From the IMG/VR virus record IMGVR_UViG_3300020469_003050, positions 62,001 through 126,000 of that record: a DNA stretch of 64,000 nucleotides. One strand, 5' to 3'. The notes under the pieces were generated by a model. It had not been told where the DNA came from and ran no database searches. It saw only the letters and a list, made by a program, of their open reading frames with translations. A program made the translations under genes and the position numbers. Every line of letters begins with the position of its first letter. Positions within the stretch are counted from its first letter, which is position 1. Positions 26,551 to 52,925 of the stretch are shown in pieces.

Positions 26551-26605
26551 AAACTTGACAATATCAAGAATCGTGTTATTATGTATACATAATGAAAAAC
26601 AAAGG
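26550..26605 (+). repeat. 56-bp promoter+RBS block, copy 2
   Basis: Near-identical to 18837-18892. Confidence 0.9.
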
Positions 26606-26615
26606 TAACTCAAAT

Positions 26616-30693: not shown

Positions 30694-30701
30694 GATAGTA
30701 A

Positions 30702-31571: not shown

Positions 31572-32007
31572 CAACTCTATCTTTATGTCTACCACCTTCA
31601 AATTTGGTAGTTAAAAACTTATCAACAATTTTTAATGCATCTTTTGTAGAAGTAAAATCTGCACCTAAACATAATACGTTTGCATCATTATGTAGTCTTG
31701 CCATTTCTGCTTCTTTAGGAGTGCGAACTGTTACTGCACGAATATGTGGATATCGATTGGCCGCTATTGCTACACCAAACCCAGAACCACATACTAAAAT
31801 CCCTCTATCAAAAACTGACTTCATTTCTAAAGCCAAACTCTTTACTACATCTGGATAATCTACTTTTGCTTTACTATCATAGCAACCACAATCTAAATAT
31901 GTTACTATATCGCTTGTTATATCTTTGTCAATAGGAACAAGATGTTTCTCTATTGCACATTTTAATTCATAACCTCTATGGTCTGAACCTGTTATTAAAT
32001 CAGTCAT
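31549..32007 (-). CDS. rpiB: Ribose-5-phosphate isomerase B
   Basis: GSDHRG, DYPD, CGSGFG, ARLHNDAN and FEGGRH; start reassigned to ATG 32007. Confidence 0.92.
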   Translation of the reverse strand: MTDLITGSDHRGYELKCAIEKHLVPIDKDITSDIVTYLDCGCYDSKAKVDYPDVVKSLALEMKSVFDRGILVCGSGFGVAIAANRYPHIRAVTVRTPKEAEMARLHNDANVLCLGADFTSTKDALKIVDKFLTTKFEGGRHKDRVAKLTSML

Positions 32008-32696
32008 TAAAAATCTATTTCCCTTCCTTTGTTTTCCCATGTACCAAATCTTGTAGGCTCTGCACCTTTAGGTCCACCCAACTCAGTAGGTATTTCCCAC
32101 GGTAAAGGTTTAGATTTATCTATTATTGGTTTAGGTAAACAAAATACTAAATGTGTTCTTAATATCTTACTTGCGTTTATGGCGGTGTGTCTTTTTGTAG
32201 TATCAACTTTATATACTCCACCATATGGTATTCTGCATACTTTATCATCGATAACCATAAAACATTTATCATCAGTTACTAAAGGAATATGCAATCTTGG
32301 TGTGTTGTCTTTATGATATGTTAAACATTTTTTCATTCCTAACATCATAAATCTACCTCTCAGGACTCCATATTCTTCGTATAATGCATTTACTACTTCG
32401 CCTATATATGTACCTTTCCATATATCACAAACTAGATTAAATACATCTTCTTCTAGTACTACATCACGTACTTTAGGTCCTGAGTTTTCGTAATCTTGTT
32501 CTGGAAAGTAATTATCCCAATCGTATAGCAAACTGCCACAACTATCAGTTAATTGCTTTTCACCCTCAATACCTTCTCTACATTGAACTGCTATCTGATA
32601 TTCATTATCAATAAGTTTCTGTTCAATGTCAAGTCCTTTGAACTCTCCTACAAGTCTCTTGTAATCGAATTCTATGTCTAATTTTTCTACACTCAT
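32007..32696 (-). CDS. 2OG-Fe(II)/Asp-Asn beta-hydroxylase-like oxygenase
   Basis: YHKD...RLHIPL...HTAIN...RTHLV. Confidence 0.7.
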   Translation of the reverse strand: MSVEKLDIEFDYKRLVGEFKGLDIEQKLIDNEYQIAVQCREGIEGEKQLTDSCGSLLYDWDNYFPEQDYENSGPKVRDVVLEEDVFNLVCDIWKGTYIGEVVNALYEEYGVLRGRFMMLGMKKCLTYHKDNTPRLHIPLVTDDKCFMVIDDKVCRIPYGGVYKVDTTKRHTAINASKILRTHLVFCLPKPIIDKSKPLPWEIPTELGGPKGAEPTRFGTWENKGREIDF

Positions 32697-33613
32697 TCAA
32701 AGTCCTCGTAATGTTTGTCGTGTTCTTGCAAAGCATAAGACAAACATAATCTATTAATATATCCGTCTCTTTCAAAATGATTGTCTTTATCTTTTGTACT
32801 AATGCCAAAGATAACACTATCACTTGGTTCTATTTCTAATGTCTTTGCTAACTCGATTTGTTTCTGTCTATATTTATTACACATATAATCAGGACTGAAC
32901 TCTTTCATTAATTCTGAATGTATTTTCATTCCAGCCATCTGTGTATAAAAGTGTTGATTTTGTAATTGCAATGCGGTACGTTCAACATTTCTTTTATATA
33001 ACATACCTGTACGCAATCCTCCAGTAGCGAATGTCTTACTGAAACTAAATGCTACATGGGTTATGCATTTATGATTTAAATCTAATCTAGGTACTTCTGC
33101 TACACCAAACAAACAACAATCTATGAATATAGCAACATTTCTTTTATTACATGTTTCTATTATTCTATCCCAGTCAAAATGTACGTTCCCAGTAGCACTA
33201 AAAGGATAACTTATAATCAAAGATGAATTGATTGGTATGTCTTTATATGTATCTAATACAGGTATCCCTAGGTCCCTGTGATACGTGTACTCGCCTCTGA
33301 GTACATGTAAGTATTTTGCAGTCTCATAGAAGTCGGTAAATGCATCAGTAATACCGTTAGTAACTAATCTATTAGTAAACTTATCAAGTCCCATTATCTT
33401 AAACTTTTTACTAGAATGTATCCACTCATCATATTGTTCTAAGAATGCCATTTGGTCATGTAATATTGAAAAGTCATAAGAGTCATTAAAGATATTAACT
33501 GAACTTCCTACCTCAATAACATCTTCATCTACAATAGCTTTTGCTTTACGAATAGCCTGTTCTCTATTCTCACAATGTTCTGTAAATAAATCTATCTTAT
33601 CTAATCTTTTCAT
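32693..33613 (-). CDS. PLP-dependent aminotransferase-like (fold I)
   Basis: PFSATGN, IFIDC and FSFSKTF..GLRTG (PLP lysine). Confidence 0.7.
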   Translation of the reverse strand: MKRLDKIDLFTEHCENREQAIRKAKAIVDEDVIEVGSSVNIFNDSYDFSILHDQMAFLEQYDEWIHSSKKFKIMGLDKFTNRLVTNGITDAFTDFYETAKYLHVLRGEYTYHRDLGIPVLDTYKDIPINSSLIISYPFSATGNVHFDWDRIIETCNKRNVAIFIDCCLFGVAEVPRLDLNHKCITHVAFSFSKTFATGGLRTGMLYKRNVERTALQLQNQHFYTQMAGMKIHSELMKEFSPDYMCNKYRQKQIELAKTLEIEPSDSVIFGISTKDKDNHFERDGYINRLCLSYALQEHDKHYEDFE

Positions 33614-34760
33614 TTGGATATATTCTTACTTGGTGGCCTGGTGCCCTTTTTGGTATCTTACTATCTGCACTTGAAACACAACTTTCACTAATACACGGCT
33701 TAGGCTTATCAAATAGTTTAAATCCACTTTCGATATATCCTAGTGGTTCATCTGCACAACTGTAAGAACGTTTAATACTTCCGTCTGGTTCTCTTATGAT
33801 AACACCTTTGAAGCCACTAGTACAATCCCAACCTTTGAACTTATTAAAGTTGAAAGCATTAAATCTTTCTGCTTGGTCTATGTACCACTTCTTGCCTTTG
33901 CTATCTTCAAACTCTACTTGCATGATTGGTGGGACACCTTTATCATCACCATTCATTATGTCTTGGTTCCACATAGTCTTTGCTGGCTTAGGTCTTATAA
34001 TCTTTTTACCTGTTGTCTTTTGTAAATCATCTGTGTATGCACGTTGTGGCATACCATTCTGCATAATCTCTAATTGCTTATCTGTATAACCTTTAACAAC
34101 AAAAGAAGCAGTAGGATCAGATTGAGGCTTTAACGTAACATTAATACCTCTGTTATGAAAGTATAATGCATTATCCCAATCAACATCAAATCTTTCAGGA
34201 ACAAGAACCATATTAATAGTTACTTGTATATCATATTCCATACATAATAAAAGTTTGTCTGCAAATTCTTCTGGCTTTGCAAACTCTCTATGATAACTGG
34301 CTGTAATACTTGCTCTATGCATTTTACCTACTATCTCAGCATACTTTATAAACCAATCTTTTTTACGAGAGATATTACTAGTCATATGAACGCTAGTGTA
34401 ATTACAATTATCGACATCATCAGCCAAATGTTGTAAGATGTCCAAGTATCCTGGATGGAAAGTAGGCTCACCACCAGATAAACTAAAATGAAAACTATTA
34501 AACCCATTATCACGTGCTTGCCTCTTTATCTCATCAATAGTTGCTAAACACAATTCTGTAGGTCTATGGTCTTTTCTATCTGACCTAGCATAAGGCCAAC
34601 AGTAACTACATTTATAATTACAGAAACGACCTAGTAACCAAGACACTGAGAATAAATCTCTATACAATAAAGTACGTTGTCCTACTTTGACAATATCATC
34701 AAAAGGTATCTTAGTAAAATCATACTGTGACCATTTAAGTGATTGCTTATCTATTTCCAT
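33597..34760 (-). CDS. Radical SAM protein (class C)
   Basis: WLLGRFCNYKCSYC, SGGEPT and C-terminal Cys cluster (WDCTSG...C...C...C). Confidence 0.9.
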   Translation of the reverse strand: MEIDKQSLKWSQYDFTKIPFDDIVKVGQRTLLYRDLFSVSWLLGRFCNYKCSYCWPYARSDRKDHRPTELCLATIDEIKRQARDNGFNSFHFSLSGGEPTFHPGYLDILQHLADDVDNCNYTSVHMTSNISRKKDWFIKYAEIVGKMHRASITASYHREFAKPEEFADKLLLCMEYDIQVTINMVLVPERFDVDWDNALYFHNRGINVTLKPQSDPTASFVVKGYTDKQLEIMQNGMPQRAYTDDLQKTTGKKIIRPKPAKTMWNQDIMNGDDKGVPPIMQVEFEDSKGKKWYIDQAERFNAFNFNKFKGWDCTSGFKGVIIREPDGSIKRSYSCADEPLGYIESGFKLFDKPKPCISESCVSSADSKIPKRAPGHQVRIYPNEKIR

Positions 34761-34761
34761 C

Positions 34762-36189
34762 TTATACCTTATATTTCTTCATTGCGTTATACAACTCTGG
34801 TAATTGTTTTTCCATGTTTTCGTTTCTGATTCCATCAAGTTTCTCATTGTATTGCCAGAACTTCTTGTTATTTTCTTCTGTGAACCAATCTTCATCATAC
34901 ATAAACTTAATATTATTATCAAGTAATTGGTCCATTTTCATTATAGCCCACTCTTTGTTTGCAGGCTTAATCATTCCCATTGCCATAGGATTTTTCTTAG
35001 CGAGTGAATGATAGTCAATATTATTTACTATTTCTGTTTTGAACTCTGTTCTAAATTCTTCCCATTTATCACGTACTTGGTCTTTTACTTCTAATGGTAG
35101 AAATCTTGTTGCTAATTCATGTGGTTTATGTATTGGGTGTGCATTAATAAATGGCTTAGGATTATTCTTTAGCATAGGAGATATAACTGCAAAGTCTTGT
35201 TCTATCTTCCACTTTAAGAAATCTGTAAAATGAAAAGCATTCAGGGCACCAATAGTAAATGCTATCCAGGCTCTGAAATTCATTTTCTCTAAACCAACTT
35301 CATCTAGTCTTACTAAATTCTTTTCCATTAGTTTTGACTTAAGTGGGTTACGTACATATTCTAATGTCTCACCTATTCCGTCCATTGATATACCAAACTG
35401 AACTTGCTTAAATTGTTTCCATAACTCTAATGCTCTAGGTTGAATGTTAGTTAAGTTAGTATTGTATTCAAGTGTCATTTCTTTTGCTTTATCTACTTCG
35501 ACACAATACTTTAAGAAATCATAATGTTCTTCAATGATAAGAGGTTCACCACCTACTAGATAAACATGTTGCATTCCTTTTACGTTTTCTTTTAAATTCT
35601 CCCAGAAGTGATCCTTCTTAACCCAATCGTAATCGTTTGATACAAATCTACCTTTGTTATTCTTATACATTTCTACGATACCATGTGTATCTTTAAACTT
35701 ATTTGTACCCCACATCTTAACATAATCATCGTACCAAGAACTACTATCCATCGGAGAACACATACGACATTTTAAGTTACAGAAATTACCTAAACGAATA
35801 TCATAGTAAGTTTGTTTTATATGATTTAAATCTATTGTACCATCTTCTGAGGTATGTTCTTTCGCTTGTTCAAATGTTATATGTTGAGCAAATCTTTCGC
35901 CATCGTTAATACGTCTGGACTTCATACCTGATTTTTCTTCACGTAAACATCTAATACACTCTGCATGCCATTTGTTATCTAACATTGTTTTACGAATTTC
36001 TTTTGCTAGTGGAGAGTTAATCGCATCAGTAATCTTATCTTGTTTAAGATTATAGTTTGTCCCATCTTCTTTCTTATAGATACCTCGAGTAGGTCCTTGA
36101 TTGGCATGACAACATACACGCAAATCTCCATTTGCACGTGTTGAGATATTAATCCAAGGTAATATGCAAAATGTATCAGGCATATTCAT
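34762..36189 (-). CDS. Radical SAM protein with N-terminal Twitch/SPASM-like domain (class A)
   Basis: FCILPW..RVCC..CIRC; CNLKCRMC; GGEPL. Confidence 0.9.
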   Translation of the reverse strand: MNMPDTFCILPWINISTRANGDLRVCCHANQGPTRGIYKKEDGTNYNLKQDKITDAINSPLAKEIRKTMLDNKWHAECIRCLREEKSGMKSRRINDGERFAQHITFEQAKEHTSEDGTIDLNHIKQTYYDIRLGNFCNLKCRMCSPMDSSSWYDDYVKMWGTNKFKDTHGIVEMYKNNKGRFVSNDYDWVKKDHFWENLKENVKGMQHVYLVGGEPLIIEEHYDFLKYCVEVDKAKEMTLEYNTNLTNIQPRALELWKQFKQVQFGISMDGIGETLEYVRNPLKSKLMEKNLVRLDEVGLEKMNFRAWIAFTIGALNAFHFTDFLKWKIEQDFAVISPMLKNNPKPFINAHPIHKPHELATRFLPLEVKDQVRDKWEEFRTEFKTEIVNNIDYHSLAKKNPMAMGMIKPANKEWAIMKMDQLLDNNIKFMYDEDWFTEENNKKFWQYNEKLDGIRNENMEKQLPELYNAMKKYKV

Positions 36190-37414
36190 TCATCTCCGTA
36201 TCCTCAAAGTTCTTTTCTCCGTTTCCTCTGAAATCTAATTCTTTTCCACATGTCTTGCCACATATCCATAATCTGTCAGGAGAGTTTATCTCCCAACTAT
36301 CTACTAAATCATTTGAAAAGTATGGTGAGTTTAGTATATCATGAATGCTATGCTTTGACAAGTCATTAAATCCTTCTCCGTATTTTCTATTCATAATAGC
36401 ATTGTCTTCGATACGTCTAGGTGTTGCCATGTCATGTCCTACTTTACTGTAGTAATGTCCTTGCCAACAACAAGGCCAAACTTTACCTTCGTAATCTACA
36501 AATATACTTTTATCTCTCATAGTCTGACAAGCAATGTCTGTAGCTTTTACATAATTATCAAATGTCTTATGTTTCTTAATCACTTTTTCAACGTTGTTTG
36601 TTGTATTTGCATTATCTGTTTTCTCTGGTGCCTTCAATATAGTAGCCATTGCTTTTGCTTTTTCTTCTGTAGTTTTTGCTTTTTTCTTTTCCATGGCTAC
36701 GTGTTGTTTCGCAACAAATTTCAATTCTGTTTTTGTTTCTACTTTTTCTTCTTTGTCGCCTGCATAATGTGTAGGTATTACATAGCGATTAGATTTCTTA
36801 TATCTAAATTTAACAAAGCCCATCTTATCTGCTAATGCTTTGGCTTCTTCAATTTGATGTTCGTTGTGTGCAAATGCAATAAAGTCCCATCTTGCTAGTC
36901 CACCAGCATCTATGAATGCCTGTGCATTTTCCATTATCTTGTTAAAGTTTGTATTCACTCTATATAAATGATTAGTATCCTCTAACCCATCTACTGCGAA
37001 AATAACTTTATCAGGCTTTCTCATTATACTTGCTAACTCTATCCACCACTCTGGTTTATGTACTGAACCATTCGTACTCAGCGTTACTTGTGGAACTCCA
37101 GCGTCTTTGTACATTCTTATAATCTCTAATAGATGAGGATACATAATTGGATCACCAAAGTTACCATTGATAAAAACATGATTAGGTAAGAACGGTTTCA
37201 TTTCTTCTATCATGTTTGTTAACAACTGTGGATCTGTATCAAGTAAATGTACATCATCACGTTTCTTTAATACTACTTCACCACCTTCTACTGCACCATC
37301 CATACCAGTAGTTCTTCCACACATAGGACATAATGCATTACATCGTGAGGTTAACTCTAAGTGTAACACACCTACATCAAATTTTATATATCTTAGTTTC
37401 TCTTGCTTCGCCAT
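36176..37414 (-). CDS. Radical SAM protein with C-terminal SPASM-like domain (class B)
   Basis: CNALCPMC, GNFGDP, YRVN and PCCW...CGKTCG. Confidence 0.9.
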   Translation of the reverse strand: MAKQEKLRYIKFDVGVLHLELTSRCNALCPMCGRTTGMDGAVEGGEVVLKKRDDVHLLDTDPQLLTNMIEEMKPFLPNHVFINGNFGDPIMYPHLLEIIRMYKDAGVPQVTLSTNGSVHKPEWWIELASIMRKPDKVIFAVDGLEDTNHLYRVNTNFNKIMENAQAFIDAGGLARWDFIAFAHNEHQIEEAKALADKMGFVKFRYKKSNRYVIPTHYAGDKEEKVETKTELKFVAKQHVAMEKKKAKTTEEKAKAMATILKAPEKTDNANTTNNVEKVIKKHKTFDNYVKATDIACQTMRDKSIFVDYEGKVWPCCWQGHYYSKVGHDMATPRRIEDNAIMNRKYGEGFNDLSKHSIHDILNSPYFSNDLVDSWEINSPDRLWICGKTCGKELDFRGNGEKNFEDTEMNEYA

Positions 37415-38994
37415 TTTAAAAATAACTCTTCCGGATATCCGTATGCGTGATTAATTTCTTCTAATTTCATTCCTCTAGTTGGTGAACCATCCCAATCTGC
37501 ACTATGCAATCTAAGATGTTTGTTTTTATCGCACATTTTCTTTACTACTTCTTTGTAGATATCTCTACGTTCTTCATATGATAGTAACCACGTAGTATAT
37601 CTTGTTGTAATATAATTACTACTCCATACCACACTATCAAATCCTTCTTCATGTGGTTGAATTCTATCTACAAGAGGCTGATAGTCTCTACATAAATCTG
37701 CTACTCCGTATGTTATATTAGGATTATGTTTAACTTTCTCATGCATTTCATAGAAGTCTTCCATTGTATCAAAGATTCTTAGAATGCTTTTTTGATATGC
37801 CTCTTTTGCTTTTTCTCTTTCACTATCCCAATTAGGTGACATGAAATCAAAGTCTTCATAAATTGATATCAGGGCTTTATCAGTCTTATACCATTCATCG
37901 TGTAAATAATCTAAGTACTGATTAAAGTCTCTCGGATCCCATTCAGTGTGTAACCATTTTCTTGCTTCTAAACTGTTCTCTGATATATCAAAGTAATGTA
38001 GACCTACATTCTCTACATCAGTATTAGGGTTCCAATTATTTAAGAATGCAAATGTTTTAAATCCTGCGGCTACACTGTAAATATTCTTTAGTGGAAACTT
38101 TCTAGGAACAAATATAACATCATTTACTGACTCTGTATTCATAACCCATATGGCATCTGGTGAGCGTTGAACTGTATAGGCTTGATATTGTAAGAAGTCT
38201 TTTTTAGTTTGACCTAGATTACTTTCGTGTGCTTTAAAGTTAGCACAATCTTCTCTAAAGAACTTTTTGAATTCTTCTTGTTCTTCTTTAATCTCTGGAT
38301 ACAAATATGTTTTAGTCTTACGAGCCTGCTCATCAAAGTTTAATACTGATAGTCCTGCTTTTAAACTCTCATTGATTAGATTCCAACCAAAGCCTGTACG
38401 ATTAATTGTTTCTTGTTCTGTTCCCGGTGACAAATACTTAGGCGTATGTCCGTCATGAAAGTTTTCTGTACTTCTCACAGCCTGTCTAACTTCCTGTTGC
38501 TTAACCCCAAAGTCTCCAAACGCAGGTCTTCCCATTGCTTTCCACATAGGATAATTGATAACGAAACATTGCTCATGTAATCTAAACCATCTATCTTTGT
38601 GTTGGTCATCAAGTATATGTCCCATTAATAAAAACTTATTTGCTTTAGCATCTGCTAACCAATCATGATTGCAATACTCTCTGAATAAACTATAACCATG
38701 TTCCAGTGGTTGCCACGTATCATATAATATGTTACCGTATGCTTGAACTACTAAAAGAACAATATCACTTTCTTCTGGATCATTGGCTAAGTCTGCTAGT
38801 ATCTTATCAACTGTATCCTCTTCGTAAATCTTATGTCTATAATGACTGTAATTGTTTCTAAGAAAGTTATAAGTCATCTGTCTAGTGTATTGTGATATTT
38901 CGTCATCACCAATAGTTTTAGATGTATCTAATACTGCACATCTAACTCTCTTGCTAAAATTGGTTGAACGTTGATGGTCTGTGTGTTTAGTCAT
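37393..38994 (-). CDS. Hypothetical protein (533 aa)
   Basis: Long ORF within the operon; no recognised motif. Confidence 0.6.
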   Translation of the reverse strand: MTKHTDHQRSTNFSKRVRCAVLDTSKTIGDDEISQYTRQMTYNFLRNNYSHYRHKIYEEDTVDKILADLANDPEESDIVLLVVQAYGNILYDTWQPLEHGYSLFREYCNHDWLADAKANKFLLMGHILDDQHKDRWFRLHEQCFVINYPMWKAMGRPAFGDFGVKQQEVRQAVRSTENFHDGHTPKYLSPGTEQETINRTGFGWNLINESLKAGLSVLNFDEQARKTKTYLYPEIKEEQEEFKKFFREDCANFKAHESNLGQTKKDFLQYQAYTVQRSPDAIWVMNTESVNDVIFVPRKFPLKNIYSVAAGFKTFAFLNNWNPNTDVENVGLHYFDISENSLEARKWLHTEWDPRDFNQYLDYLHDEWYKTDKALISIYEDFDFMSPNWDSEREKAKEAYQKSILRIFDTMEDFYEMHEKVKHNPNITYGVADLCRDYQPLVDRIQPHEEGFDSVVWSSNYITTRYTTWLLSYEERRDIYKEVVKKMCDKNKHLRLHSADWDGSPTRGMKLEEINHAYGYPEELFLKWRSKRN

Positions 38995-41330: not shown

Positions 41331-41337
41331 ACTGTAT

Positions 41338-46188: not shown

Positions 46189-47132
46189 TACTTAAGCCCC
46201 ATTTTCAAAAAGAATTGTTTCGATCCAACTGTAATCACTCCACTGTACTGTTCGTATGACATTGGAAATCTTAAGTTGAAATTTTGTGAACTAGGAAAAG
46301 GTCTAGGGACATCTCCTGTTTCGCCAACTAATACCACTCTTTTAGTGTCTGGTATCATATCATACCAATCCTGGAAATTGGTTAGATAACTTACACTGCA
46401 ATTAATGATAGTACCTGGGATCTCATTGTATGGAGTAGATAATTTTCCATCAGCTAAACGTGTTTGAAACTCATTTTCTATATAATTAACCTCAAACAAA
46501 TCTTGCGTATTTGATTTAAATTTCCAATCCTGCAATAATTCTTTTTTGTGAAATTCATCTGCTAAGAACTGACACGTACCATTAATATCGAATGAACGAA
46601 TATTCTCAAATCGCATCTTAGTATCTAAGAGCATAGAACCTAATAATCCCATACCCCCTCCTAATAGATAAACAACACCAATATATTTCTGACCATATAC
46701 GTAAATCATTTGTTGTACAATCCAACTATACAGTTTTGCATTATCTTTATTTGCAAATGTACTCATATCTACGTTAGGATAGTTATATATTATTTCTTTA
46801 AATCTATCGACAATAGTATCATTGTCTGTTAAATTAACGTGTGCTAAGAATTCCATTGCACATCGATAATTATGTAATTGCTGACTTACGTTCTCTAAAG
46901 AATATTCAACTGCCATTTTCTGATAGTCGTATTCTTTTACAAGTAAGTCACGCCTTCTTTTAGTCTTTCTGTTAGGCTTTTCTGTTATTTCAATAGTTTC
47001 ATTTTTAGGAATATCAGGTAATTCTTCTGAACTTATATCTACTGACGGATCTTTACTGTCGTAAAGGTCATCTGACTTTGTAATTTTACTTTTGTCAAAC
47101 CTAGCCTTTCTTCTTTCTTTTATATTACTCAT
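46188..47132 (-). CDS. Methyltransferase-like paralog
   Basis: LGGGMG, RSFDIN and INCSVSY, aligning by eye with the neighbour's C-terminal domain. Confidence 0.5.
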   Translation of the reverse strand: MSNIKERRKARFDKSKITKSDDLYDSKDPSVDISSEELPDIPKNETIEITEKPNRKTKRRRDLLVKEYDYQKMAVEYSLENVSQQLHNYRCAMEFLAHVNLTDNDTIVDRFKEIIYNYPNVDMSTFANKDNAKLYSWIVQQMIYVYGQKYIGVVYLLGGGMGLLGSMLLDTKMRFENIRSFDINGTCQFLADEFHKKELLQDWKFKSNTQDLFEVNYIENEFQTRLADGKLSTPYNEIPGTIINCSVSYLTNFQDWYDMIPDTKRVVLVGETGDVPRPFPSSQNFNLRFPMSYEQYSGVITVGSKQFFLKMGLK

Positions 47133-49902
47133 TGTTAAAGTCCTGTTTAAATTGAGAATTTAACCAATCATAGTCATTGATTAATCCTAGTTTTTCTGGG
47201 TTGTCTGCGTTCTCACTACCAAACTTTCTGCCAGCGTTTGCTCCTGCAACTGAATACTTACCATACTTTGCATTATCATCAGATACAGTACACCAAGTAT
47301 CTAATCGTTCTTTATCCTCATCTGCTTTGAGATTATGAATAATACCTGAACTCAACTTAGTACACTCTCTGAAAGCAGACTTCCAGGTGTCGTATGGGTT
47401 AGTATTAAATGCGGTGTAGTTAGCAACTACAGGCATAGGTTTAAACTTTTCTGAAATTGATGTAGTAAAGTCAATGTTCCAATCTTTCGCATCACGTAAT
47501 AATTGTGTTGGAAATAATTTAAGTCCACCGAAACCATATATTAATCCATTGATAGGATTTTTAGACTTCCAAACATGAACTGCATCTTCGTCCCACACTG
47601 TAGGAAAGTATTCGAACTTAAATTCATCTAATAATATTGCATCTGCATCAAGTACATAAAACATTTTCGTATCTGCAACTTCGGCCGCACGTTTATGAGC
47701 ATTAAAGATACCTTTAACTCCGTGAACTCGTTTTGCATTTGGTACACGTGAAAGTAATTTAGCATAGTTTTCTTCTGCTTCTTTTTCACGATAGGAAAGA
47801 AACACTACATCAAAGGGTATATCGGCTGATGATGGCGTCTTCGATTTGACTGGCTTTTTATTCTTAAAATTCATCTTACGAATTTTATCATCATCCGGCT
47901 TCAATTCTTTTAGAGCGGCAGTGGGTATAAGGCTCAGTCCACCATATTGATGAACGTAACCAGTGTAGGGATTAGACTTAGGCCATACATGAAAATGTGA
48001 TTTATGGTGTCTGTCTACATAGAATGTTCTACTGAAATCTTCTGTTAATTCTACATCATTATTGATAGCCCAAAAATAACCTGACTTGGTCATCTTCGTT
48101 GCTCTCATATATGCTTTTGCAAGACCTTTACTTGCATCAATTACATCGATATTCTCATGGTCGTTAAAGTACTTGGCATGTTCTTTATACATACCTTCAT
48201 CGAAATAAAATGCAGGATGTCCTACAACTCTACTCGCAACTTCATCAACTCTGATAATATTTTTAAATCTATCGAATGAGAAGTCTTGCTCAGTTAGTTT
48301 AAACTTATCTAAGTGAGGTCTATGAACTAAATATACTCCAGCCTCTTTGCCTTCTTCACTTTTAAATGCAAATACATTTTCGATAGAAAAGATATCGGGA
48401 TAGTAATCAAATTGAAAATCATCTAACAACTCTACCGCGGTATCTATTACCCAATAAAACACTCTACCCTTTGACTGCTTATATGCTTTGAAAGGATCAC
48501 GTGTAAAATACTTTTTAATATTATGTTTATCTGGTATTCTCATACCATAACTATCATGCAGATTTACATTATCTGGATGATAATCTTTATTACTGAATGC
48601 TAATCCACCATGACCTAAATCTTTACCTGTTCTTGCACGTTGTCTCCATATATGTGTTGGACCCAAGTTATATAAATCAGGATAAAAATCATCAATCATT
48701 GGATTAATTAATTTTAAATCTGGATTGACCATCCAGAAAGTATATTCTTTTGCAAGTTTAACTGCTTCTTCAACTGTTCTTGCTTCAACTATTTCTATTT
48801 CTTTTAATCTACCTACAATTAAATCAATATCTTTTTGTTGTTCTTCATCAGGTTTATGAGGAACAAGTCGTACACCGTTACGCACAGGCATACCAGTTGA
48901 TGTATTAACTTTAAAATTATGAATTTTATCTCTATCGTAAATAAATGGATAGAAATTAATATCAAATTCTTCTACATCATCATGAATTAACCAATACATA
49001 TCTGTATCAACTTCGTGACTTAAATCATGCATGTCTTTTGTTCTAATTACAGGAAACTCTAAATCTTTACACATAGCATCTTTTTCATAGACTGCTTTCT
49101 TTTTAAAGTTAAATATTTCGTAATCTTTTTCTTTAAACATAGGACCTTCTTTAGGAAATAATCCTAGTCCATGATATTCACGTGTTAAATTAGTTATTGG
49201 ATTTTGTTTCTGCCATACAACTACTTTTTGTTTCTCTTTATCTAAGCCAAACGCAAAAGAATAATCAAATTCGAATTTATTAAATATTTCTGTATTAGGA
49301 TGAATTAAATAATAAAAATCAGTACGAGTCATTTCTCTGCACTTAGTATGCACATCAACATTATTATCGCCAGTAACTGTTTTTATTTCAGGAAAGCGTT
49401 GTTTTAATCTTTTTAAATTAACTTTACCGTAGTCTTTTTCCCAATAAAATATTTCATATGTTTCTGTTGTTGGTTTATATTTTACGAATTGTTTGGTATC
49501 ATGCTCTTTGAACTCTCCAGTCAAATAATAAGCATCTTTGATATGTTCTTCTGATTGTTTTAATACTTCGCTAGTCTTAAATAATTTGACACCAACAACT
49601 GAACGCCATGAATTTCTTTCATCAGCATTCCAGACATGAGTTATATTTTCATCCCATTCATTGGTCTGAAAGTCATAATCAAAATGTGGATTGACTTCGA
49701 CATCTGGATCAATAACCCAGAAGTGTTTAGTATTAGCAACGGTACCAATTTTCTTGATTGCTGACGTTAACTTAGGGTCATTCCAATCTTCTAAATTGAT
49801 TTTAACCATACGAAAATTAGGGTACTTTTCTTTTATTCTATCGTACCTTTCGTTGGTCTCTCTATCGTTCTTATATGTTAGAAAAAATCCATCGTAAGCC
49901 AT
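47125..49902 (-). CDS. Multi-repeat GT-A glycosyltransferase-like protein
   Basis: Seven ~120-aa repeats; the last has GVKGIFNAH..FYVLDAD (DxD). Confidence 0.65.
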   Translation of the reverse strand: MAYDGFFLTYKNDRETNERYDRIKEKYPNFRMVKINLEDWNDPKLTSAIKKIGTVANTKHFWVIDPDVEVNPHFDYDFQTNEWDENITHVWNADERNSWRSVVGVKLFKTSEVLKQSEEHIKDAYYLTGEFKEHDTKQFVKYKPTTETYEIFYWEKDYGKVNLKRLKQRFPEIKTVTGDNNVDVHTKCREMTRTDFYYLIHPNTEIFNKFEFDYSFAFGLDKEKQKVVVWQKQNPITNLTREYHGLGLFPKEGPMFKEKDYEIFNFKKKAVYEKDAMCKDLEFPVIRTKDMHDLSHEVDTDMYWLIHDDVEEFDINFYPFIYDRDKIHNFKVNTSTGMPVRNGVRLVPHKPDEEQQKDIDLIVGRLKEIEIVEARTVEEAVKLAKEYTFWMVNPDLKLINPMIDDFYPDLYNLGPTHIWRQRARTGKDLGHGGLAFSNKDYHPDNVNLHDSYGMRIPDKHNIKKYFTRDPFKAYKQSKGRVFYWVIDTAVELLDDFQFDYYPDIFSIENVFAFKSEEGKEAGVYLVHRPHLDKFKLTEQDFSFDRFKNIIRVDEVASRVVGHPAFYFDEGMYKEHAKYFNDHENIDVIDASKGLAKAYMRATKMTKSGYFWAINNDVELTEDFSRTFYVDRHHKSHFHVWPKSNPYTGYVHQYGGLSLIPTAALKELKPDDDKIRKMNFKNKKPVKSKTPSSADIPFDVVFLSYREKEAEENYAKLLSRVPNAKRVHGVKGIFNAHKRAAEVADTKMFYVLDADAILLDEFKFEYFPTVWDEDAVHVWKSKNPINGLIYGFGGLKLFPTQLLRDAKDWNIDFTTSISEKFKPMPVVANYTAFNTNPYDTWKSAFRECTKLSSGIIHNLKADEDKERLDTWCTVSDDNAKYGKYSVAGANAGRKFGSENADNPEKLGLINDYDWLNSQFKQDFNNE

Positions 49903-49928
49903 TGTTGTCCTGTCAAATTCATACTAGT

Positions 49929-49957
49929 ATTATAGCAGATTACGTCTTGCTTGTAAA
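49929..49957 (-). promoter_or_regulatory. Minus-strand sigma70 promoter
   Basis: Reverse complement reads TTTACA-N17-TATAAT with TG extension, upstream of the 925-aa gene. Confidence 0.6.
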
Positions 49958-51505
49958 GACCAAAGTTTTGTAATAATTCGCAAAATCCCTAGCATCTTGC
50001 TCGTTATTGACTATTGGCATACCTTTGATATTCAGTGAAGTATTCAGTAACATAGGACAACCTGTTTTATCATAAAAACGTGTTAATAATTCATGTAGAC
50101 CTGCATGTTGTTCTTTGTTAACTGTTTGGACACGTGAAGTTCCATCTTTATGAATAATTGCTGGAAAATCTTTTGGGTGCTTACACTTAGCTATGAACTG
50201 CATATAAGGACCTGAAGGACCATCGAAATAATCATTCACGTATTCTTCTAATATCATAGGCGCAAACGGTCTGAACTGTTGTCTGCGTTTTATTTCATTT
50301 ACAGTATCTTTTATGTCATTCCCTCTAGGATCTGCACATAAACTACGATTACCTAATGCACGTGGACCGAACTCTGCACGACCTGATGCTATACCACAAA
50401 TAGACCCTTGAAGTAAAGCATTAAGTACATCTTCGACAGGATACTCTCCAGGTATGTCATGTCCAAGATATGGGCTTTTCCATTGAATTCTTTCACGTGA
50501 ATATTTCTGAGCAACACCGATACAACTACCAGCATCGCCAGGATTAGGCATAATCCATACTGACTTGAAATAATCTTTTATCATACTATTCGCACTACAA
50601 TTTAAAGCACAACCACCCATCAGAACTAAATTCTCTGAGTGACACATTGCTTTAGATTTAATTAATATTTCGGATAGTATCATTTCATACACATGTTGCG
50701 TTGCGGCGGCTAAGTCGAATAAGTCTTGTTCCTCTTTTAATTCAGGTAAGAACCATCGACAACCACGATGCAAATTCTGTGTAAATTTAATTAGGGTATT
50801 CTTTTGCATAGTATATCCAACTAATCCAGACTCATGAATAATACCGAACTCATCATATATATGTTGAATTAATTCTTTACCTTCATATAATCTGTGTGGA
50901 TCACCATAAGCGGCCATACCCATTAAAATATATTCATCTTCGTTAGGCTTTAATCCAAGACGTTGAGTCATTGCTGAATAAAATAAACCTATTGAACTTG
51001 GATAACTCTGAGAATATACTTTCTCTAATCTCATTCCATGTCCCTTCCAGAACGTAAGTGTTTCGAATTCTCCTATTGAATCGATAACAACTATCGTAGC
51101 TTCATCATACGGCGAAGTAAAGTAACCACTTGCGGCATGAGTATAATGATGCTTTTGATATTTAATTGGAATATGTTTTAATTGTGGAAACTTTTCTAAG
51201 TATTGACTCGGTAATTCAGACGTATCTAAACTTAATTTCCATTGACCTGCACGTAATTGACGTAATTTTTTAAGCATTGGTTTCTCATACCAAGCAATTA
51301 AATCAGGCTTACCCCCATAATGAATAGCATCTGTTAATAGAGCCTCATTTAAATCAGGGTCATTTTTCTTTTTAGAATAACGTTCCGCATGCCCGGCGAA
51401 TTTAATCTCGCCTTCATCAATAATAGCTACTGCGGCGTCATGATTTATGGCACCACTAATACCCATTATTACGGGTTCACGCCTATTTATAAATGAACGG
51501 ATCAC
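49940..51505 (-). CDS. Carbamoyltransferase (NodU/CmcH family)
   Basis: HDAA, HAERY, HHYTHA, EFGPRALGNRS, RPFAP and LNTSLN. Confidence 0.93.
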   Translation of the reverse strand: MIRSFINRREPVIMGISGAINHDAAVAIIDEGEIKFAGHAERYSKKKNDPDLNEALLTDAIHYGGKPDLIAWYEKPMLKKLRQLRAGQWKLSLDTSELPSQYLEKFPQLKHIPIKYQKHHYTHAASGYFTSPYDEATIVVIDSIGEFETLTFWKGHGMRLEKVYSQSYPSSIGLFYSAMTQRLGLKPNEDEYILMGMAAYGDPHRLYEGKELIQHIYDEFGIIHESGLVGYTMQKNTLIKFTQNLHRGCRWFLPELKEEQDLFDLAAATQHVYEMILSEILIKSKAMCHSENLVLMGGCALNCSANSMIKDYFKSVWIMPNPGDAGSCIGVAQKYSRERIQWKSPYLGHDIPGEYPVEDVLNALLQGSICGIASGRAEFGPRALGNRSLCADPRGNDIKDTVNEIKRRQQFRPFAPMILEEYVNDYFDGPSGPYMQFIAKCKHPKDFPAIIHKDGTSRVQTVNKEQHAGLHELLTRFYDKTGCPMLLNTSLNIKGMPIVNNEQDARDFANYYKTLVFTSKT

Positions 51506-51599
51506 GCTTCTTTAATTCCTCTAATCTCTTTTTCATTTCTCTACGTCTTTTAAACTCTGTCCAAGGATAAAGAATTATATCAATTATCTTTCTAATCAT
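51483..51599 (-). CDS. 38-aa peptide ending PFIYK (not in ORF track)
   Basis: MIRKIIDIILYPWTEFKRRREMKKRLEELKKRDPFIYK; ATGA-coupled to the upstream gene, AAAGGA RBS. Confidence 0.65.
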   Translation of the reverse strand: MIRKIIDIILYPWTEFKRRREMKKRLEELKKRDPFIYK

Positions 51600-52315
51600 G
51601 ATTTATTTCCTTTAATATCCACATGTAATATCTCTGCCCATTCGGCATGAGCCTCTTCATCTGGATGCATATATCGTTCATCTCCTTCTACAGGAAAGAA
51701 CTTTTTATTTTCATACATATAAGTAAAAAACGTTTGGTCTTCATATATTTTACTCATATCTAATTGTTTATAAACTGAAACCATATCACTTTGCTCACAT
51801 AACTCAGTAAACTTAGTTGGCTCTAATAAATTAGGTGTTAAATTAAGTGAATTAAATATTATATAAGGTATCTTATTAGCAGTAAAGAAATTCTGGAGTG
51901 TCATTAAATGAATTAAATAACAATGAAAATCATATACTGGTGACCAGAAATGCTTCATATACAACTGATTAAATAAATCTAAATCACGGTTGTTTTGCTC
52001 ATCTAAATTAATATTCCCATGATATTCATGCGATGGAATATTATGAACTAATAAATTCTTTTTCTCAATAAAATGCTCTCTACGATTAGGAGCGGTCATA
52101 CCAATAGCAACGAAATCAACTGTTTCTTTATTAACTAATTTATCGCTTATAGTAGTAATAGTATTACGAACAATATAATTATTCGATACCCCACGCTGAG
52201 CCTCAGTCTCTACTCCATCAATATTCATTTTATCAGCTAGAATAAAAGGCCATGCTCGGTCTTTATGGGCTAGACCAGTTCCATAAGTGAAACTGCATCC
52301 GTTTGCATATAACAT
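51596..52315 (-). CDS. SGNH/GDSL-like hydrolase or acyltransferase
   Basis: NGCSFTYG, GVSN and HPDEEAH. Confidence 0.7.
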   Translation of the reverse strand: MLYANGCSFTYGTGLAHKDRAWPFILADKMNIDGVETEAQRGVSNNYIVRNTITTISDKLVNKETVDFVAIGMTAPNRREHFIEKKNLLVHNIPSHEYHGNINLDEQNNRDLDLFNQLYMKHFWSPVYDFHCYLIHLMTLQNFFTANKIPYIIFNSLNLTPNLLEPTKFTELCEQSDMVSVYKQLDMSKIYEDQTFFTYMYENKKFFPVEGDERYMHPDEEAHAEWAEILHVDIKGNKS

Positions 52316-52325
52316 ATTTTAATCC

Positions 52326-52925
52326 TTATTCATTATTATATCTGAAACAGCCAAGTAATGCAAGTCTTTTTTGGTCTGAATTGACTACTTGATGTTCCCA
52401 ATTAGTATTAATGTACCAGACATCTCCAGGAGTTTGCATTTCTTTTACTACTGCTTTGCGTTTTTTAATCTCAAAACTCTGAATACCATTTAATACACAT
52501 ACAAATCTATCTAATTCAGGTTGGTCTATATGCCAAGGTAAAGTCTCATTTGGCTCCATAACTGCATATCTTAGACGATATACTGGACCACCTAATATCT
52601 TTTCTAAACTTTCAACTGCTGGTTTAAGTCTTAAAAATCTCTCATCTAAGTAATTAAAATCTGTTTCTACAGGCTCATAGTCTGGATCATCATAACGAGT
52701 ACGCTGGAACGTTTGGATATCACGCTGGTCATAACCCGCTGGCATATAAGAATCTTGTTCTTTATACATACCTGAACGTGAACGTAATGCACTAGTAGAA
52801 GCCATAGTCGAACTTGCCGTGTGAAAACAATCTCTAAAAAGATGAATTTCTGGACCCGTAATAGAACCCATATTATCGAATAGGGGTAATTTAATTCTTT
52901 TATTTGCTATTGCTCTGCGATCCAT
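52326..52925 (-). CDS. Asp/Asn beta-hydroxylase-like 2OG oxygenase
   Basis: LPWHID, HQVVN and RLALL; start reassigned to ATG 52925 after AGGAG. Confidence 0.7.
   Translation of the reverse strand: MDRRAIANKRIKLPLFDNMGSITGPEIHLFRDCFHTASSTMASTSALRSRSGMYKEQDSYMPAGYDQRDIQTFQRTRYDDPDYEPVETDFNYLDERFLRLKPAVESLEKILGGPVYRLRYAVMEPNETLPWHIDQPELDRFVCVLNGIQSFEIKKRKAVVKEMQTPGDVWYINTNWEHQVVNSDQKRLALLGCFRYNNE

Follow-up and report, generated by a model that had tools for sequence, protein, structure and literature searches.

A marine phage genome of about 342 kb carries an operon-like island of 21 kb, in which seven genes for radical SAM (rSAM) enzymes surround genes for a glycosyltransferase-like and a methyltransferase-like protein. 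The island was examined within a stretch of 64,000 nt (hereafter the window), and all coordinates below refer to it. The locus is viral, being 100% identical to a 342.6-kb IMG/VR contig. Positions 31549-52925 form a single, continuous minus-strand run of 18 genes, numbered g01 to g18 from the low-coordinate end, with gaps of at most 90 nt. Of the 17 gene junctions, 11 overlap (by 1-34 nt), one abuts, and five are gaps of 1, 7, 10, 37 and 90 nt, while the GC skew flips to negative exactly over 32-52 kb.

Gene content of the island

The genes of the run, and one gene outside it, are the following.

31549-32040 (minus): g01, RpiB/LacAB-family sugar-phosphate isomerase, last gene of the run
32007-32696 (minus): g02, Asp/Arg-hydroxylase-family (cupin, Fe/2OG-type) oxygenase with a C-terminal DUF1674/SDHAF4-like tail
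32693-33613 (minus): g03, short fold-type-I PLP-enzyme-like protein (putative aminotransferase)
33597-34760 (minus): g04, rSAM class C, core member; CxxxCxxC at residues 47-54 and C-terminal Cys313/335/356/361
34762-36189 (minus): g05, rSAM class A (N-terminal twitch), accessory paralogue
36176-37414 (minus): g06, rSAM class B (C-terminal twitch/SPASM-like), accessory paralogue
37393-38994 (minus): g07, 533-aa protein, inferred functional partner of the g08 hydroxylase
38987-39793 (minus): g08, Asp/Arg-hydroxylase-family oxygenase (weak LpxO/OlsC-like)
39783-41330 (minus): g09, rSAM class A, core member, with the N-terminal Cys28/46/47/109/112 cluster
41338-42408 (minus): g10, rSAM class C, divergent accessory paralogue of g04
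42408-43499 (minus): g11, rSAM class B, core member, with C-terminal Cys259/278/279/347/351
43480-44775 (minus): g12, rSAM class A, accessory paralogue
44776-46188 (minus): g13, helical N-domain (residues 1-287) plus a predicted class I SAM-methyltransferase-fold C-domain (295-470), the latter a core member
46188-47132 (minus): g14, divergent paralogue of the g13 C-domain
47125-49902 (minus): g15, 925-aa protein with five truncated or degenerate GT-A N-terminal half-domains plus one complete GT-A/GT2-like domain (residues about 695-925, DAD motif), the latter a core member
49940-51505 (minus): g16, NodU/CmcH-type carbamoyltransferase
51596-52315 (minus): g17, DUF6071 protein, possibly an SGNH-like hydrolase or esterase
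52326-52925 (minus): g18, cupin-like protein, first gene of the run
10223-11371 (plus): S-adenosylmethionine synthetase (MetK), outside the island, with all three Pfam S-AdoMet_synt domains

The observation made in the preliminary description, i.e. a nearly gap-free minus-strand run with seven radical SAM proteins, was confirmed, with two corrections. The run continues one gene beyond the low-coordinate end given there (32007), to 31549, thus including g01. Its upstream end, 52925, is the likely true start of g18, because the longer ORF extending to 53180 overlaps a plus-strand acyl-carrier-protein (ACP) gene (52981-53217), and because relatives and public gene calls give proteins of about 200 aa (191-210 aa).

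Each of the seven rSAM proteins has exactly one CxxxCxxC motif plus four to five further clustered cysteines. Six of them (g04, g05, g06, g10, g11 and g12) exceed the Pfam Radical_SAM cut-off (e.g. 45.1 bits for g06, which also matches SPASM at 22.8 bits, and 36.9 bits for g10). In contrast, g09 is below it (25.6 against 29.5), but scores 437 bits on the NCBIfam N_Twi_rSAM profile, whose cut-off is 170; g05 and g12 score 353 and 294.8 bits on the same profile. The seven are not independent enzymes, but fall into three paralogue classes: A (g05, g09, g12), B (g06, g11) and C (g04, g10). In pairwise comparisons, g05 is 34% identical to g09, g12 is 29% identical to g05 and g09, g06 is 34% identical to g11, and g10 shows 21% identity to g04 over 312 aa (E 3e-15). 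The extra cysteines are invariant in 112 of 112 orthologues of g04 (the four C-terminal Cys), in 100 of 100 of g09 and in 66 of 66 of g11.

The remaining enzymes listed in the preliminary description were largely confirmed. Two of its three oxygenases, g02 (Pfam Asp_Arg_Hydrox 35.4 bits, cut-off 22.6; DUF1674 37.7 bits) and g08 (61.4 bits), are above the Pfam cut-off, while the third, g18, has only a sub-threshold Cupin_2 hit (20.4 bits). Homologues of g02 are present in 34 of 80 viral loci. NCBIfam hits of g08 to LpxO and OlsC are far below their cut-offs (27.7 against 450, 23.8 against 500). The evidence for g03 as a PLP enzyme is weak but consistent: it matches Pfam Aminotran_1_2 at 25.2 bits, its family profile hits aminotransferases in the PDB weakly (E 0.007), and D165, S190, K193 (the lysine of an SxSK motif) and R201 are invariant or near-invariant. 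The carbamoyltransferase g16 has both Pfam domains (Carbam_trans_C 178 bits, Carbam_trans_N 147 bits). The protein described as SGNH, g17, is Pfam DUF6071 (38.4 bits), with a plausible N-terminal G-C-S (of G-x-S type) and a C-terminal D..H recognized by eye only. As for g01, it matches Pfam LacAB_rpiB (154.6 bits) and NCBIfam PRK05571 (145.7 bits against a cut-off of 135), and is present only in the closest relatives. Searches with g07 gave no Pfam, NCBIfam, PHROG or PDB hit.

The two methyltransferase-like proteins, g13 and g14, gave no Pfam or PDB sequence hit. However, the C-terminal domain of the AF2 model of g13 (pLDDT 86.9) matches class I SAM methyltransferases, with 83 PDB hits at E <= 1e-3 in a Foldseek search, including SibL, NodS, TleD, RebM and NovO (prob 1.0, E about 1e-4). 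The g14 protein matches the g13-family HMM at 109.7 bits, and keeps the G-rich loop and the acidic residue of strand 2, but loses the NTSCEH motif. The repeat glycosyltransferase-like nature of g15 was confirmed by HMM repeats and by its AF2 model (pLDDT 91.8), whose Foldseek matches in the PDB are SunS, WrtF, PcManGT, RmlT and K4CP, and in BFVD are viral GTs. A homologue (L077) passes the Pfam GT2 cut-off, and g15 orthologues are 925-1522 aa long. It should be considered that Foldseek scores for both models are moderate (E about 1e-4, TM 0.3-0.6).

A five-gene core shared with Bdellovibrionota

One member of each rSAM class (g09, g11 and g04), the GT2-like C-terminal domain of g15 and the methyltransferase-fold C-terminal domain of g13 form a five-gene core. 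These are the five most conserved families around the anchor in 74 genome loci, mostly from predatory Bdellovibrionota. The island is not a phage invention, but is built on a core shared with Bdellovibrionota chromosomes, where it lies next to dnaG/rpoD and GT2 genes; neither this nor the paralogy of the rSAMs had been recognized in the preliminary description. Bdellovibrionota proteins are 55-73% identical to g04, many bacterial proteins are 65-70% identical to g09 and bacterial orthologues are 40-54% identical to g11, and the bacterial homologues of g13 lie next to the GT-like gene. Among viruses, g04 orthologues occur in hundreds of large contigs (at least 65% identity in at least 594 viral stretches). 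In the tree of class A rSAMs, which is midpoint-rooted, the viral copies nest within the Bdellovibrionota branches.

Synteny is conserved in relatives of the phage, with the gene content varying cassette by cassette around a fixed core. The PLP gene recurs next to class A rSAM genes. The bacterial loci are full of GT2 genes, and contain a PMT_2/ArnT-like membrane GT and an FAD oxidase. No conserved small ORF, and hence no conserved precursor peptide, was found in the 74 bacterial loci or upstream of the phage run.

Gene fusions provided further links. The GT-like domain is fused to a class A rSAM in a 722-aa protein (L032), and g07 is fused to an Asp_Arg_Hydrox domain in three bacterial proteins of 651-808 aa. 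Class C rSAM domains are embedded in proteins of 1100-2500 aa with chondroitin/heparosan-synthase-like and SpsA-like GT2 domains.

Possible function of the island

The preliminary description proposed an undescribed pathway building a heavily decorated glycan or modification on virion proteins, DNA or the host surface, and this interpretation is partly supported. The enzyme inventory and the lack of a previous description hold: public sources call every member hypothetical, and literature searches returned, apart from catalogue entries for rSAM families, only a passing mention of rSAM cassettes in pelagimyophages. A carbohydrate pathway gains real support from the predicted GT-A/GT2 fold of g15 with its DxD motif, the GT-like::rSAM-A fusion, the class C rSAM domains within multi-GT2 proteins, the GT2 and PMT_2 neighbours in the bacterial loci, and the presence of a carbamoyltransferase and a sugar-phosphate isomerase in the run. 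The RiPP alternative also raised there is disfavoured, because no conserved small ORF exists. The comparison with BtrN is not supported, in that none of the three rSAM classes has detectable sequence similarity to BtrN or to any solved sugar-acting rSAM, and only the gene-pair logic (a PLP enzyme next to a class A rSAM) recurs; nor do the data discriminate between virion, DNA and host surface as the target.

The reading we favour, although we consider it only about as likely as not, is that the island is a phage-borne, expanded copy of a conserved bacterial module that builds and decorates an unusual sugar on a glycoconjugate through radical chemistry. In this view, the core would comprise a soluble GT2-like transferase, a class I methyltransferase-fold protein and three rSAMs each carrying an auxiliary Fe-S cluster, and would build or remodel one unusual sugar residue during infection. 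The GT-like domain would bind or transfer a nucleotide-activated sugar; the three rSAMs would each abstract a hydrogen atom with a 5'-deoxyadenosyl radical, to oxidise, epimerise, dehydrate or form C-C bonds on that sugar; and the methyltransferase-fold protein would methylate it. The accessory genes, including the extra rSAM paralogues g05, g06, g10 and g12, would diversify the product: a class A rSAM and g03 would act as an oxidise-then-transaminate pair making an amino sugar, the hydroxylases g02 and g08 (with g07) would add OH groups, g16 would O-carbamoylate, g17 may de-esterify and g18 may isomerise. Sugar phosphate and SAM would be supplied by g01 and perhaps by the phosphomannomutase and MetK elsewhere in the window; for MetK, as a SAM source for seven rSAM and two methyltransferase-fold proteins, this link is inference only. 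The product would most likely be a glycoconjugate at a cell or virion surface, with an acceptor (host envelope, virion or other) left undetermined by the present evidence. What the analysis demonstrates is limited to gene content, folds, conservation of the Fe-S ligands, synteny, fusions, taxonomic distribution and the absence of a precursor peptide, while every chemical step, the substrate class and the target are inferred.

Besides the carbohydrate-related features above, this reading is favoured by the seven rSAMs in three classes with invariant auxiliary-cluster cysteines, by the five core families being the most conserved ones around the anchor in the 74 genome loci, by the sugar and Nod-factor methyltransferases RebM and NodS among the matches of g13, by the action of carbamoyltransferases of this family (NodU, TobZ, NovN) on sugar hydroxyls, by the recurrent PLP gene, and by the cassette-wise variation, as in surface-glycan islands. 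On the other hand, no nucleotidyltransferase, Wzx/Wzy/ABC exporter, polyprenyl-phosphate transferase or acceptor protein is encoded in the island, none of the rSAM classes resembles a characterised sugar-acting rSAM, SPASM/twitch enzymes are more often peptide maturases, and the two hydroxylases belong to a family that also acts on proteins and lipids. In addition, fatty-acid-desaturase-family genes recur near the island, and KAS and ACP genes flank it in the close relatives.

Other functions are conceivable, but each appears unlikely. The island might make a diffusible glycoside, aminocyclitol or nucleoside-like metabolite rather than a surface polymer, used by both predatory bacteria and phages against the cell they attack. 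The very strong conservation of the core enzymes (55-73% identity between phage and bacteria), the lack of polymer export or assembly genes, the distribution centred on predators and viruses, and the resemblance of the rSAM, PLP, carbamoyltransferase and methyltransferase mix to aminoglycoside and nucleoside antibiotic clusters would agree with this, but the fusions of class C rSAM domains to polysaccharide-synthase-type GT2 domains, the many GT2 genes and the GT-C-type PMT_2 of the bacterial loci, the hypervariable accessory content and the lack of any resistance or export gene speak against it. Almost as likely is that acyl chains or lipid head groups (such as those of lipid A, ornithine lipid or a glycolipid) are modified by the rSAMs and oxygenases, considering the weak LpxO/OlsC-type hits of g08, the FA_desaturase-family genes inside or near the cluster in about 24 loci (with two copies in the window), the KAS, ACP and AMP-binding enzyme genes of the window, and the existence of lipid-altering rSAM enzymes such as Tes. 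However, these lipid genes are outside the co-oriented run and on the other strand, the LpxO/OlsC scores are very low, no acyltransferase is in the island, and the core partner is a soluble GT2-like protein.

A similarly low likelihood is assigned to the modification of a peptide (RiPP) or of a structural or fibre protein by SPASM/twitch maturases, hydroxylases and a peptide glycosyltransferase. Weak NCBIfam hits to many such maturases do appear, the top PDB fold match of the GT-like domain is the peptide S-glycosyltransferase SunS, Asp/Asn hydroxylases act on proteins, the cluster of Bdellovibrio sp. HCB2-146 lies next to a 1959-aa Peptidase_S74 fibre protein, and pelagimyophage rSAM cassettes sit in the tail-fibre region (PMC7029224). 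Against this, besides the missing small ORF, profile searches of the island revealed no PqqD/RRE domain, leader peptidase or exporter, the fibre neighbour is seen in only 3-4 loci, and the island of the window is not next to structural genes. Least likely is hypermodification of DNA or nucleotides, which would fit a phage in which class C rSAMs have viperin/MoaA/QueE-like N-terminal regions, GTP cyclohydrolase I is encoded in the window, and the island abuts thyA-DHFR in many relatives, given that GT and carbamoyl-type DNA decorations occur in phages. Yet the core is chromosomal in Bdellovibrionota, the viperin score is 40-47 bits against a cut-off of 180, a true ThyA with DHFR suggests canonical thymidine, and there is no DNA transglycosylase, kinase or hydroxymethylase.

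Comparison with known systems

The class A proteins belong to the NCBIfam family NF033640 (twitch domain-containing radical SAM protein, N_Twi_rSAM), to which g05, g09 and g12 align over their full length (295-437 bits), sharing the N-terminal C-x17-CC-x(40-61)-CxxC cluster ahead of the CxxxCxxC core. This family is only a sequence catalogue entry, for which our searches found no described substrate, reaction or genomic system, and classes B and C are not in it. The BtrN/BtrS step of 2-deoxystreptamine biosynthesis, in which a twitch rSAM dehydrogenase is followed by a PLP aminotransferase, has its gene-pair logic repeated in phage and bacterial loci, where a twitch-type rSAM lies next to a fold-type-I PLP enzyme. 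However, the twitch domain is N-terminal here and C-terminal in BtrN, no sequence similarity to BtrN or any solved rSAM is detectable, g03 is a truncated PLP protein of about 300 aa, and no inositol or cyclitol synthase is present. RiPP maturation systems with SPASM/twitch rSAMs and glycocin S-glycosyltransferases (SunS/ThuS) share auxiliary-cluster rSAMs and the GT-like fold, but here there is no precursor peptide, RRE, protease or exporter.

The hypervariable glycan or host recognition islands of marine T4-like pelagimyophages and cyanomyophages (PMC7029224) match the cassette variation seen here, although that paper only mentions the rSAM cassettes and defines no core, no bacterial counterpart and no classes; moreover, the present island is not beside tail-fibre genes, and its phage has only weak links to PA5oct-like jumbo phages. 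In the multi-domain bacterial GT2-TPR-rSAM proteins (P0216, P0238, P0241, P0245 and P0249), the rSAM domain aligns with g04 and g10 over the full length (E 1e-15 to 1e-26) and sits between the two types of GT2 domains mentioned above, but identity is only 21-32%, and these are single giant polypeptides without assigned function, not an operon with classes A and B. Finally, the jumbo phages RsoM2USA and Vibrio K566/K567, whose genes are all annotated as hypothetical, have no class B or C orthologues, and the identity of their rSAMs is only 23%; nonetheless, K566 has several class A-like rSAMs in a row, and RsoM2USA (genes 347-350) has the minimal trio of methyltransferase-like, GT-like and class A rSAM genes in the same order (31-40% identity).

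The gene run and its radical SAM proteins

The window matches a 342,607-bp IMG/VR viral contig at 100% identity, and its proteins recur on contigs of about 322-343 kb in many ocean assemblies, including Tara surface samples, where they are always annotated as 'hypothetical'. Megablast of the whole island against 50,697 phage records returned no match. The genes of the island are numbered g01 to g18 from the low-coordinate end. From 31549 to 52925 every gene lies on the minus strand; of the 17 gene junctions, 11 overlap, one abuts, and five are gaps of 1-90 nt, and the GC skew inverts over exactly this stretch. The island lies between plus-strand genes as follows.

30172-31571 (+): DHFR and ThyA
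31549-52925 (-): the 18-gene run, g01 to g18
52981-53217 (+): 78-aa acyl carrier protein (ACP), with a DSL phosphopantetheine motif and PP-binding in public gene calls, transcribed divergently from the island

The preliminary description of a co-oriented minus-strand run with seven radical SAM (rSAM) genes is therefore confirmed, with one change of boundary. The run extends one gene beyond the lower bound previously proposed, to g01, an RpiB/LacAB sugar-phosphate isomerase. At the other end, the ACP gene overlaps the long ORF form of g18 (to 53180) and shows that form to be spurious; the start of g18 is most likely at 52925, as the preliminary description had it, and relatives and public gene calls give a protein of about 200 aa. 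A promoter and terminator scan performed no better than on shuffled sequence, and no tRNA and no Rfam family were found in the window.

Each of the seven rSAM proteins has one CxxxCxxC motif, which in this superfamily binds the SAM-cleaving [4Fe-4S] cluster, and the motif cysteines are invariant in 66-112 orthologues. The Pfam family PF04055 is above its cut-off for six of them; g09 is below it (25.6 against 29.5), but scores 437 bits on the NCBIfam family NF033640 (N_Twi_rSAM). All-against-all comparison sorted the seven proteins into three paralogue classes. Class A (g05, g09 and g12) carries an additional C-x17-CC-x(40-61)-CxxC cluster N-terminal to the barrel, and its members match NF033640 over their full length (g05 353 bits, g09 437 bits and g12 295 bits, against a curated cut-off of 170); g04, g06, g10 and g11 score 29-46 bits, and are therefore not members of this family. 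Class B (g06 and g11) has a C-terminal C-x18-CC-x67-CxxxC set, and class C (g04 and g10) has four C-terminal cysteines. In orthologue alignments, the auxiliary cysteines are invariant: the five N-terminal cysteines of g09 in 100 of 100, C259/278/279/347/351 of g11 in 66 of 66, and C313/335/356/361 of g04 in 112 of 112. This conservation is that of a set able to bind an extra Fe-S cluster, the binding itself being inferred from sequence. Pfam SPASM is marginal for g06 (22.8 against 21.5) and absent for g04, g10 and g11.

Profile and single-sequence searches of all PDB chains with classes A, B and C found no match to BtrN, and none of the classes has a detectable relative among solved structures beyond the generic N-terminal rSAM segment. 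In addition, the twitch domain of class A is N-terminal, whereas a BtrN-like dehydrogenase would have it at the C-terminus. Membership of the viperin family was likewise not supported, as g04 and g10 score 39.7 and 46.6 bits against an NCBIfam cut-off of 180, over the first ~80-115 model positions only. A search of the PHROGs gave only generic 'radical SAM domain' hits.

The other genes of the island and of the window

The glycosyltransferase-like protein g15 (925 aa) consists of five truncated copies of the N-terminal half of a GT-A domain, with degenerate DxD positions, followed by one complete domain in which a DAD motif lies at the invariant Asp column. The complete domain was modelled with 26 homologues (AF2, pLDDT 91.8), and the predicted GT-A fold was matched by Foldseek to the GT2 enzymes SunS, PcManGT, RmlT and the chondroitin polymerase K4CP (prob 1.0) and to WrtF in the PDB. 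In BFVD, it matched viral glycosyltransferases as well as two uncharacterized Caudovirales proteins of 804 and 1076 aa at TM about 0.85. The Pfam Glycos_transf_2 score of g15 is 21.1 against a gathering score of 23.3, while one bacterial member of the family (locus protein L077) scores 29.8, and stand-alone homologues have no precomputed Pfam hit. Orthologues of g15 range from 925 to 1522 aa.

The protein g13 has a helical N-domain and a C-domain with a predicted class I SAM-methyltransferase fold. Its AF2 model (pLDDT 86.9) matches 83 PDB methyltransferase chains at E <= 1e-3, including NodS and RebM, with TM up to 0.64 normalized to the target, and G301 and D326, at the G-rich loop expected after strand 1 and the acidic residue expected at the end of strand 2 of this seven-stranded Rossmann-like fold, are invariant. 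It should be noted that all sequence-level tests were negative, namely Pfam run on all 33 members of the g13 family, a PDB profile search, and hhalign of the family against E. coli UbiG, and that only the fold search settled the fold. The protein g14 is a divergent paralogue of the same domain.

The protein g16 is a NodU/CmcH-type carbamoyltransferase with both Carbam_trans_N (146.9 bits) and Carbam_trans_C (178.2 bits) above their cut-offs; its score on the NodU equivalog is 140 against 1000, so that it is a member of the family and not NodU itself. The proteins g02 and g08 are Asp/Arg-hydroxylase-family oxygenases (PF05118, 35.4 and 61.4 bits against 22.6). The last ~28 residues of g02 form a DUF1674/SDHAF4-type motif (Pfam 37.7 bits), which is normally a small stand-alone protein of alphaproteobacteria and mitochondria. 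The PLP-enzyme-like protein g03 has an invariant lysine (K193) in an SxSK motif and an invariant D165, but its Pfam match (25.2 against 19.7) is just above the cut-off and covers only 108 residues, its best PDB profile hit has E 0.007, and it is about 60-100 aa shorter than typical members. The protein g17 is DUF6071, and g18 is cupin-like below threshold. No fold could be assigned to g07, and hhalign of g07 against the GT-like and MTase-like profiles was negative. PDB sequence searches with g07, g13, g14, g15, the g09 profile, g04 and g11 gave nothing useful.

Outside the island, the window holds an unusually rich set of cellular-type genes, a run of lipid and secondary-metabolism-type genes (20103-26550), and a few further ORFs. 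The features of the window considered here, including the C-terminal motif of g02, are the following.

2800-4341 (+): 513-aa protein with no family hit, 36.5% identical over 89% of its length to a hypothetical protein of PA5oct-like Pseudomonas jumbo phages, the only clear link to cultured phages seen in the window
4363-5655 (+): xanthine/uracil permease (Pfam 179 bits), whose best PHROG (phrog_27398) is labelled 'tail protein', probably a mislabelled PHROG family
8523-9200 (+): GTP cyclohydrolase I
10223-11371 (+): S-adenosylmethionine synthetase (MetK)
13236-13946 (+): eukaryotic-type phosphomannomutase
15006-15980 (+): SbmA/BacA-like transporter
16787-18058 (+): DegP-like trypsin-PDZ protease
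18879-20030 (+): MoxR-like AAA ATPase
20103-21467 (+): AMP-binding enzyme
21470-23146 (+): tryptophan halogenase
23146-23871 (+): FA_desaturase-family paralogue
24642-25418 (+): FA_desaturase-family paralogue
25402-26550 (+): beta-ketoacyl synthase (KAS)
26592-27935 (+): DUF2201 VWA-metallopeptidase-like protein
32007-32090 (-): DUF1674/SDHAF4-type C-terminal motif of g02
59696-63172 (-): three consecutive ORFs of 334, 412 and 415 aa, none with a Pfam hit; the two larger have no PHROG hit, and the 415-aa one has no phage tblastn match

The core module in bacteria and viruses

The core class A protein g09 is 65-70% identical to thousands of database proteins. A scan of one genome per species returned 74 loci, about 60 of which are from Bdellovibrionota (Bdellovibrionales, Pseudobdellovibrionaceae, Bacteriovoracaceae, Halobacteriovoraceae and Oligoflexia), including megabase chromosomes and the isolate Bdellovibrio sp. 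HCB2-146. Clustering of all the ORFs of these loci showed that the five most conserved families are the counterparts of g09, g11, g04, the g15 C-domain and the g13 C-domain, a typical order being MTase-like, GT-like, A, B, C within about 6 kb. Some loci abut dnaG and rpoD, and are therefore chromosomal.

Everything else varies. Some loci have further class A, B or C paralogues, up to ten rSAM genes in a row, while others add GT2 genes, a PMT_2 membrane glycosyltransferase, FAD amine-oxidase-like proteins, a PP-loop ATPase, an acetyltransferase or a fatty-acid-desaturase-family gene. Desaturase-family genes recur near the rSAM island in about 24 other loci, and KAS in the close relatives. A ~211-aa PP-loop ATPase-like gene with a faint QueC hit lies directly after the g04 orthologue in L174 (11107-11742), a related 363-kb contig with an eight-rSAM island, and has homologues in 49 other fetched loci, but is absent from the window. 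The same contig carries rubredoxin, rubrerythrin and a NifU/IscU-like scaffold (17975-19288) a few kb from its island, which would be Fe-S assembly and redox support; such genes travel with the island in only 6-8 loci and are absent from the window. In Bdellovibrio sp. HCB2-146 (locus L169, 17278-21377), the cluster lies next to a 1959-aa protein with a Peptidase_S74 (tail-spike chaperone) domain, like the phage-fibre-like adhesins of Bdellovibrio. However, this neighbour is present in only 3-4 loci, and the idea that the module modifies Peptidase_S74 fibre proteins was dropped as a general explanation.

Among viruses, g04 orthologues (65-99% identity) occur in at least 594 IMG/VR stretches. 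Of the 80 that were fetched, 74 have class A paralogues nearby and 44 have the g09 orthologue, and in many of them the island ends with the g04 orthologue beside thyA-DHFR, as here. The close relatives of the window keep the whole run in order, but the divergence is mosaic: in comparison with the nearest relative (loci L005/L091), most genes are 89-99% identical, while the accessory rSAM genes g06 (36176-37414) and g12 (43480-44775) are 69% identical between flanking genes of 90-99%, which suggests cassette replacement or diversifying selection on particular accessory rSAMs. Cultured jumbo phages have only distant versions, namely genes 347-350 of RsoM2USA and those of Vibrio phage K566.

Three independent gene fusions bear on function. 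The GT-like domain is fused to a class A rSAM in a 722-aa protein (locus L032), and similar proteins of 713-722 aa appear in the database search; g07 and the g08 hydroxylase are one polypeptide in three bacteria; and a class C-type rSAM domain that aligns with g04 and g10 end to end sits inside proteins of 1100-2500 aa, which in one of them (P0241) carry TPR repeats and GT2 domains resembling chondroitin synthase, heparosan synthase and SpsA.

A maximum-likelihood tree of 100 rSAM-A orthologues places all 32 viral sequences in one subtree, which lies among the Bdellovibrionota branches, beside the Bacteriovoracaceae/Halobacteriovoraceae group. Because the tree is midpoint-rooted, with SH-aLRT support only, the direction from bacterium to phage is likely but not proven. 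The few 'cellular' rows that are not from Bdellovibrionota (L015, L055-L057, L069, L071 and L074-L076, contigs from Planctomycetota, Verrucomicrobiales, Acidimicrobiaceae, Chloroflexota, Rickettsiales, Gammaproteobacteria, Neisseriaceae and Bacteroidota MAGs) fall inside the viral subtree, and are therefore probably viral contigs mis-binned with cells. The module points to gene flow between predatory bacteria and huge phages.

Proposed function and comparison with known systems

The most economical reading is a carbohydrate pathway, in which a GT2-like transferase, a methyltransferase and three auxiliary-cluster rSAMs would make or remodel an unusual sugar. The phage adds four more rSAM paralogues, a probable oxidize-and-transaminate pair (a class A rSAM with g03, a gene that recurs next to class A rSAM genes), two hydroxylases, a carbamoyltransferase and a sugar-phosphate isomerase. 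The MetK and phosphomannomutase encoded elsewhere in the window fit a need for SAM and sugar phosphate, but are not linked to the island. While gene content, cysteine conservation, synteny, fusions and distribution come directly from the sequences, and the folds from predicted models, all the chemistry is inferred, including reductive cleavage of SAM to the 5'-deoxyadenosyl radical, binding of the auxiliary clusters, transfer of a sugar from an NDP-sugar donor, and the substrate class of the hydroxylases. A nucleotidyltransferase, an exporter and any named acceptor are missing, and we consider this reading about as likely as not. The interpretation given in the preliminary description, of an undescribed pathway producing a heavily decorated glycan or modification, is partly supported.

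The alternatives appear unlikely. A diffusible glycoside-type metabolite is marginally the best placed among them, followed closely by modification of lipids or glycolipids and by modification of a peptide or protein, while DNA or nucleotide modification appears very unlikely. Against a peptide substrate and a RiPP cluster, no small ORF is conserved in more than 5 of the 74 loci, no plausible minus-strand peptide lies upstream of g18, and no RRE (with no PqqD-type hit in the family searches), protease or exporter is present. A bolder version of the carbohydrate reading, compatible with the data but doubtful on present evidence, is that the three invariant rSAMs, with their dedicated GT2-like and MTase-fold partners, carry out a multi-step radical construction of a sugar type not yet known, possibly branched-chain, high-carbon or carbocyclic; in this view, the trait originated in predatory Bdellovibrionota, was captured once by a large clade of marine and freshwater huge phages, and is used by both at the surface where attacker meets prey or host.

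If the product is a new sugar, it would add new radical carbohydrate chemistry and a new way for phages to alter cell or virion surfaces. Considering the number of viral stretches involved, and the recurrence of the window's own proteins on ~342-kb contigs in many Tara and other ocean assemblies, the encoded chemistry is probably common in the sea. In addition, Bdellovibrio sp. HCB2-146 is a culturable organism carrying the core, which makes its function accessible to genetics without isolating the phage.

Literature searches for the N-terminal twitch family, for a Bdellovibrio rSAM/GT cluster, for rSAM in O-antigen or nucleotide-sugar pathways, and for rSAM in huge phages found, among open-access papers and preprints, no description of the five-gene core, its Bdellovibrionota home or the fusions. 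Class A belongs to a catalogued but uncharacterized NCBIfam family, and RadicalSAM.org notes only that some members of the SPASM/twitch megacluster carry N-terminal Cys sets, and that no structures of them are available; the other two classes are not catalogued, although all three have clear orthologue sets and invariant putative Fe-S ligands. The analogy with BtrN put forward in the preliminary description holds for gene pairing, not for family membership. The pelagimyophage study (PMC7029224) mentions rSAM cassettes in hypervariable islands without analysing them. We therefore regard the locus not as categorically new, but as a glycan-type tailoring island, on the reading preferred here, for which what had been only 'radical SAM cassettes' in marine phage islands now receives a specific five-gene definition.
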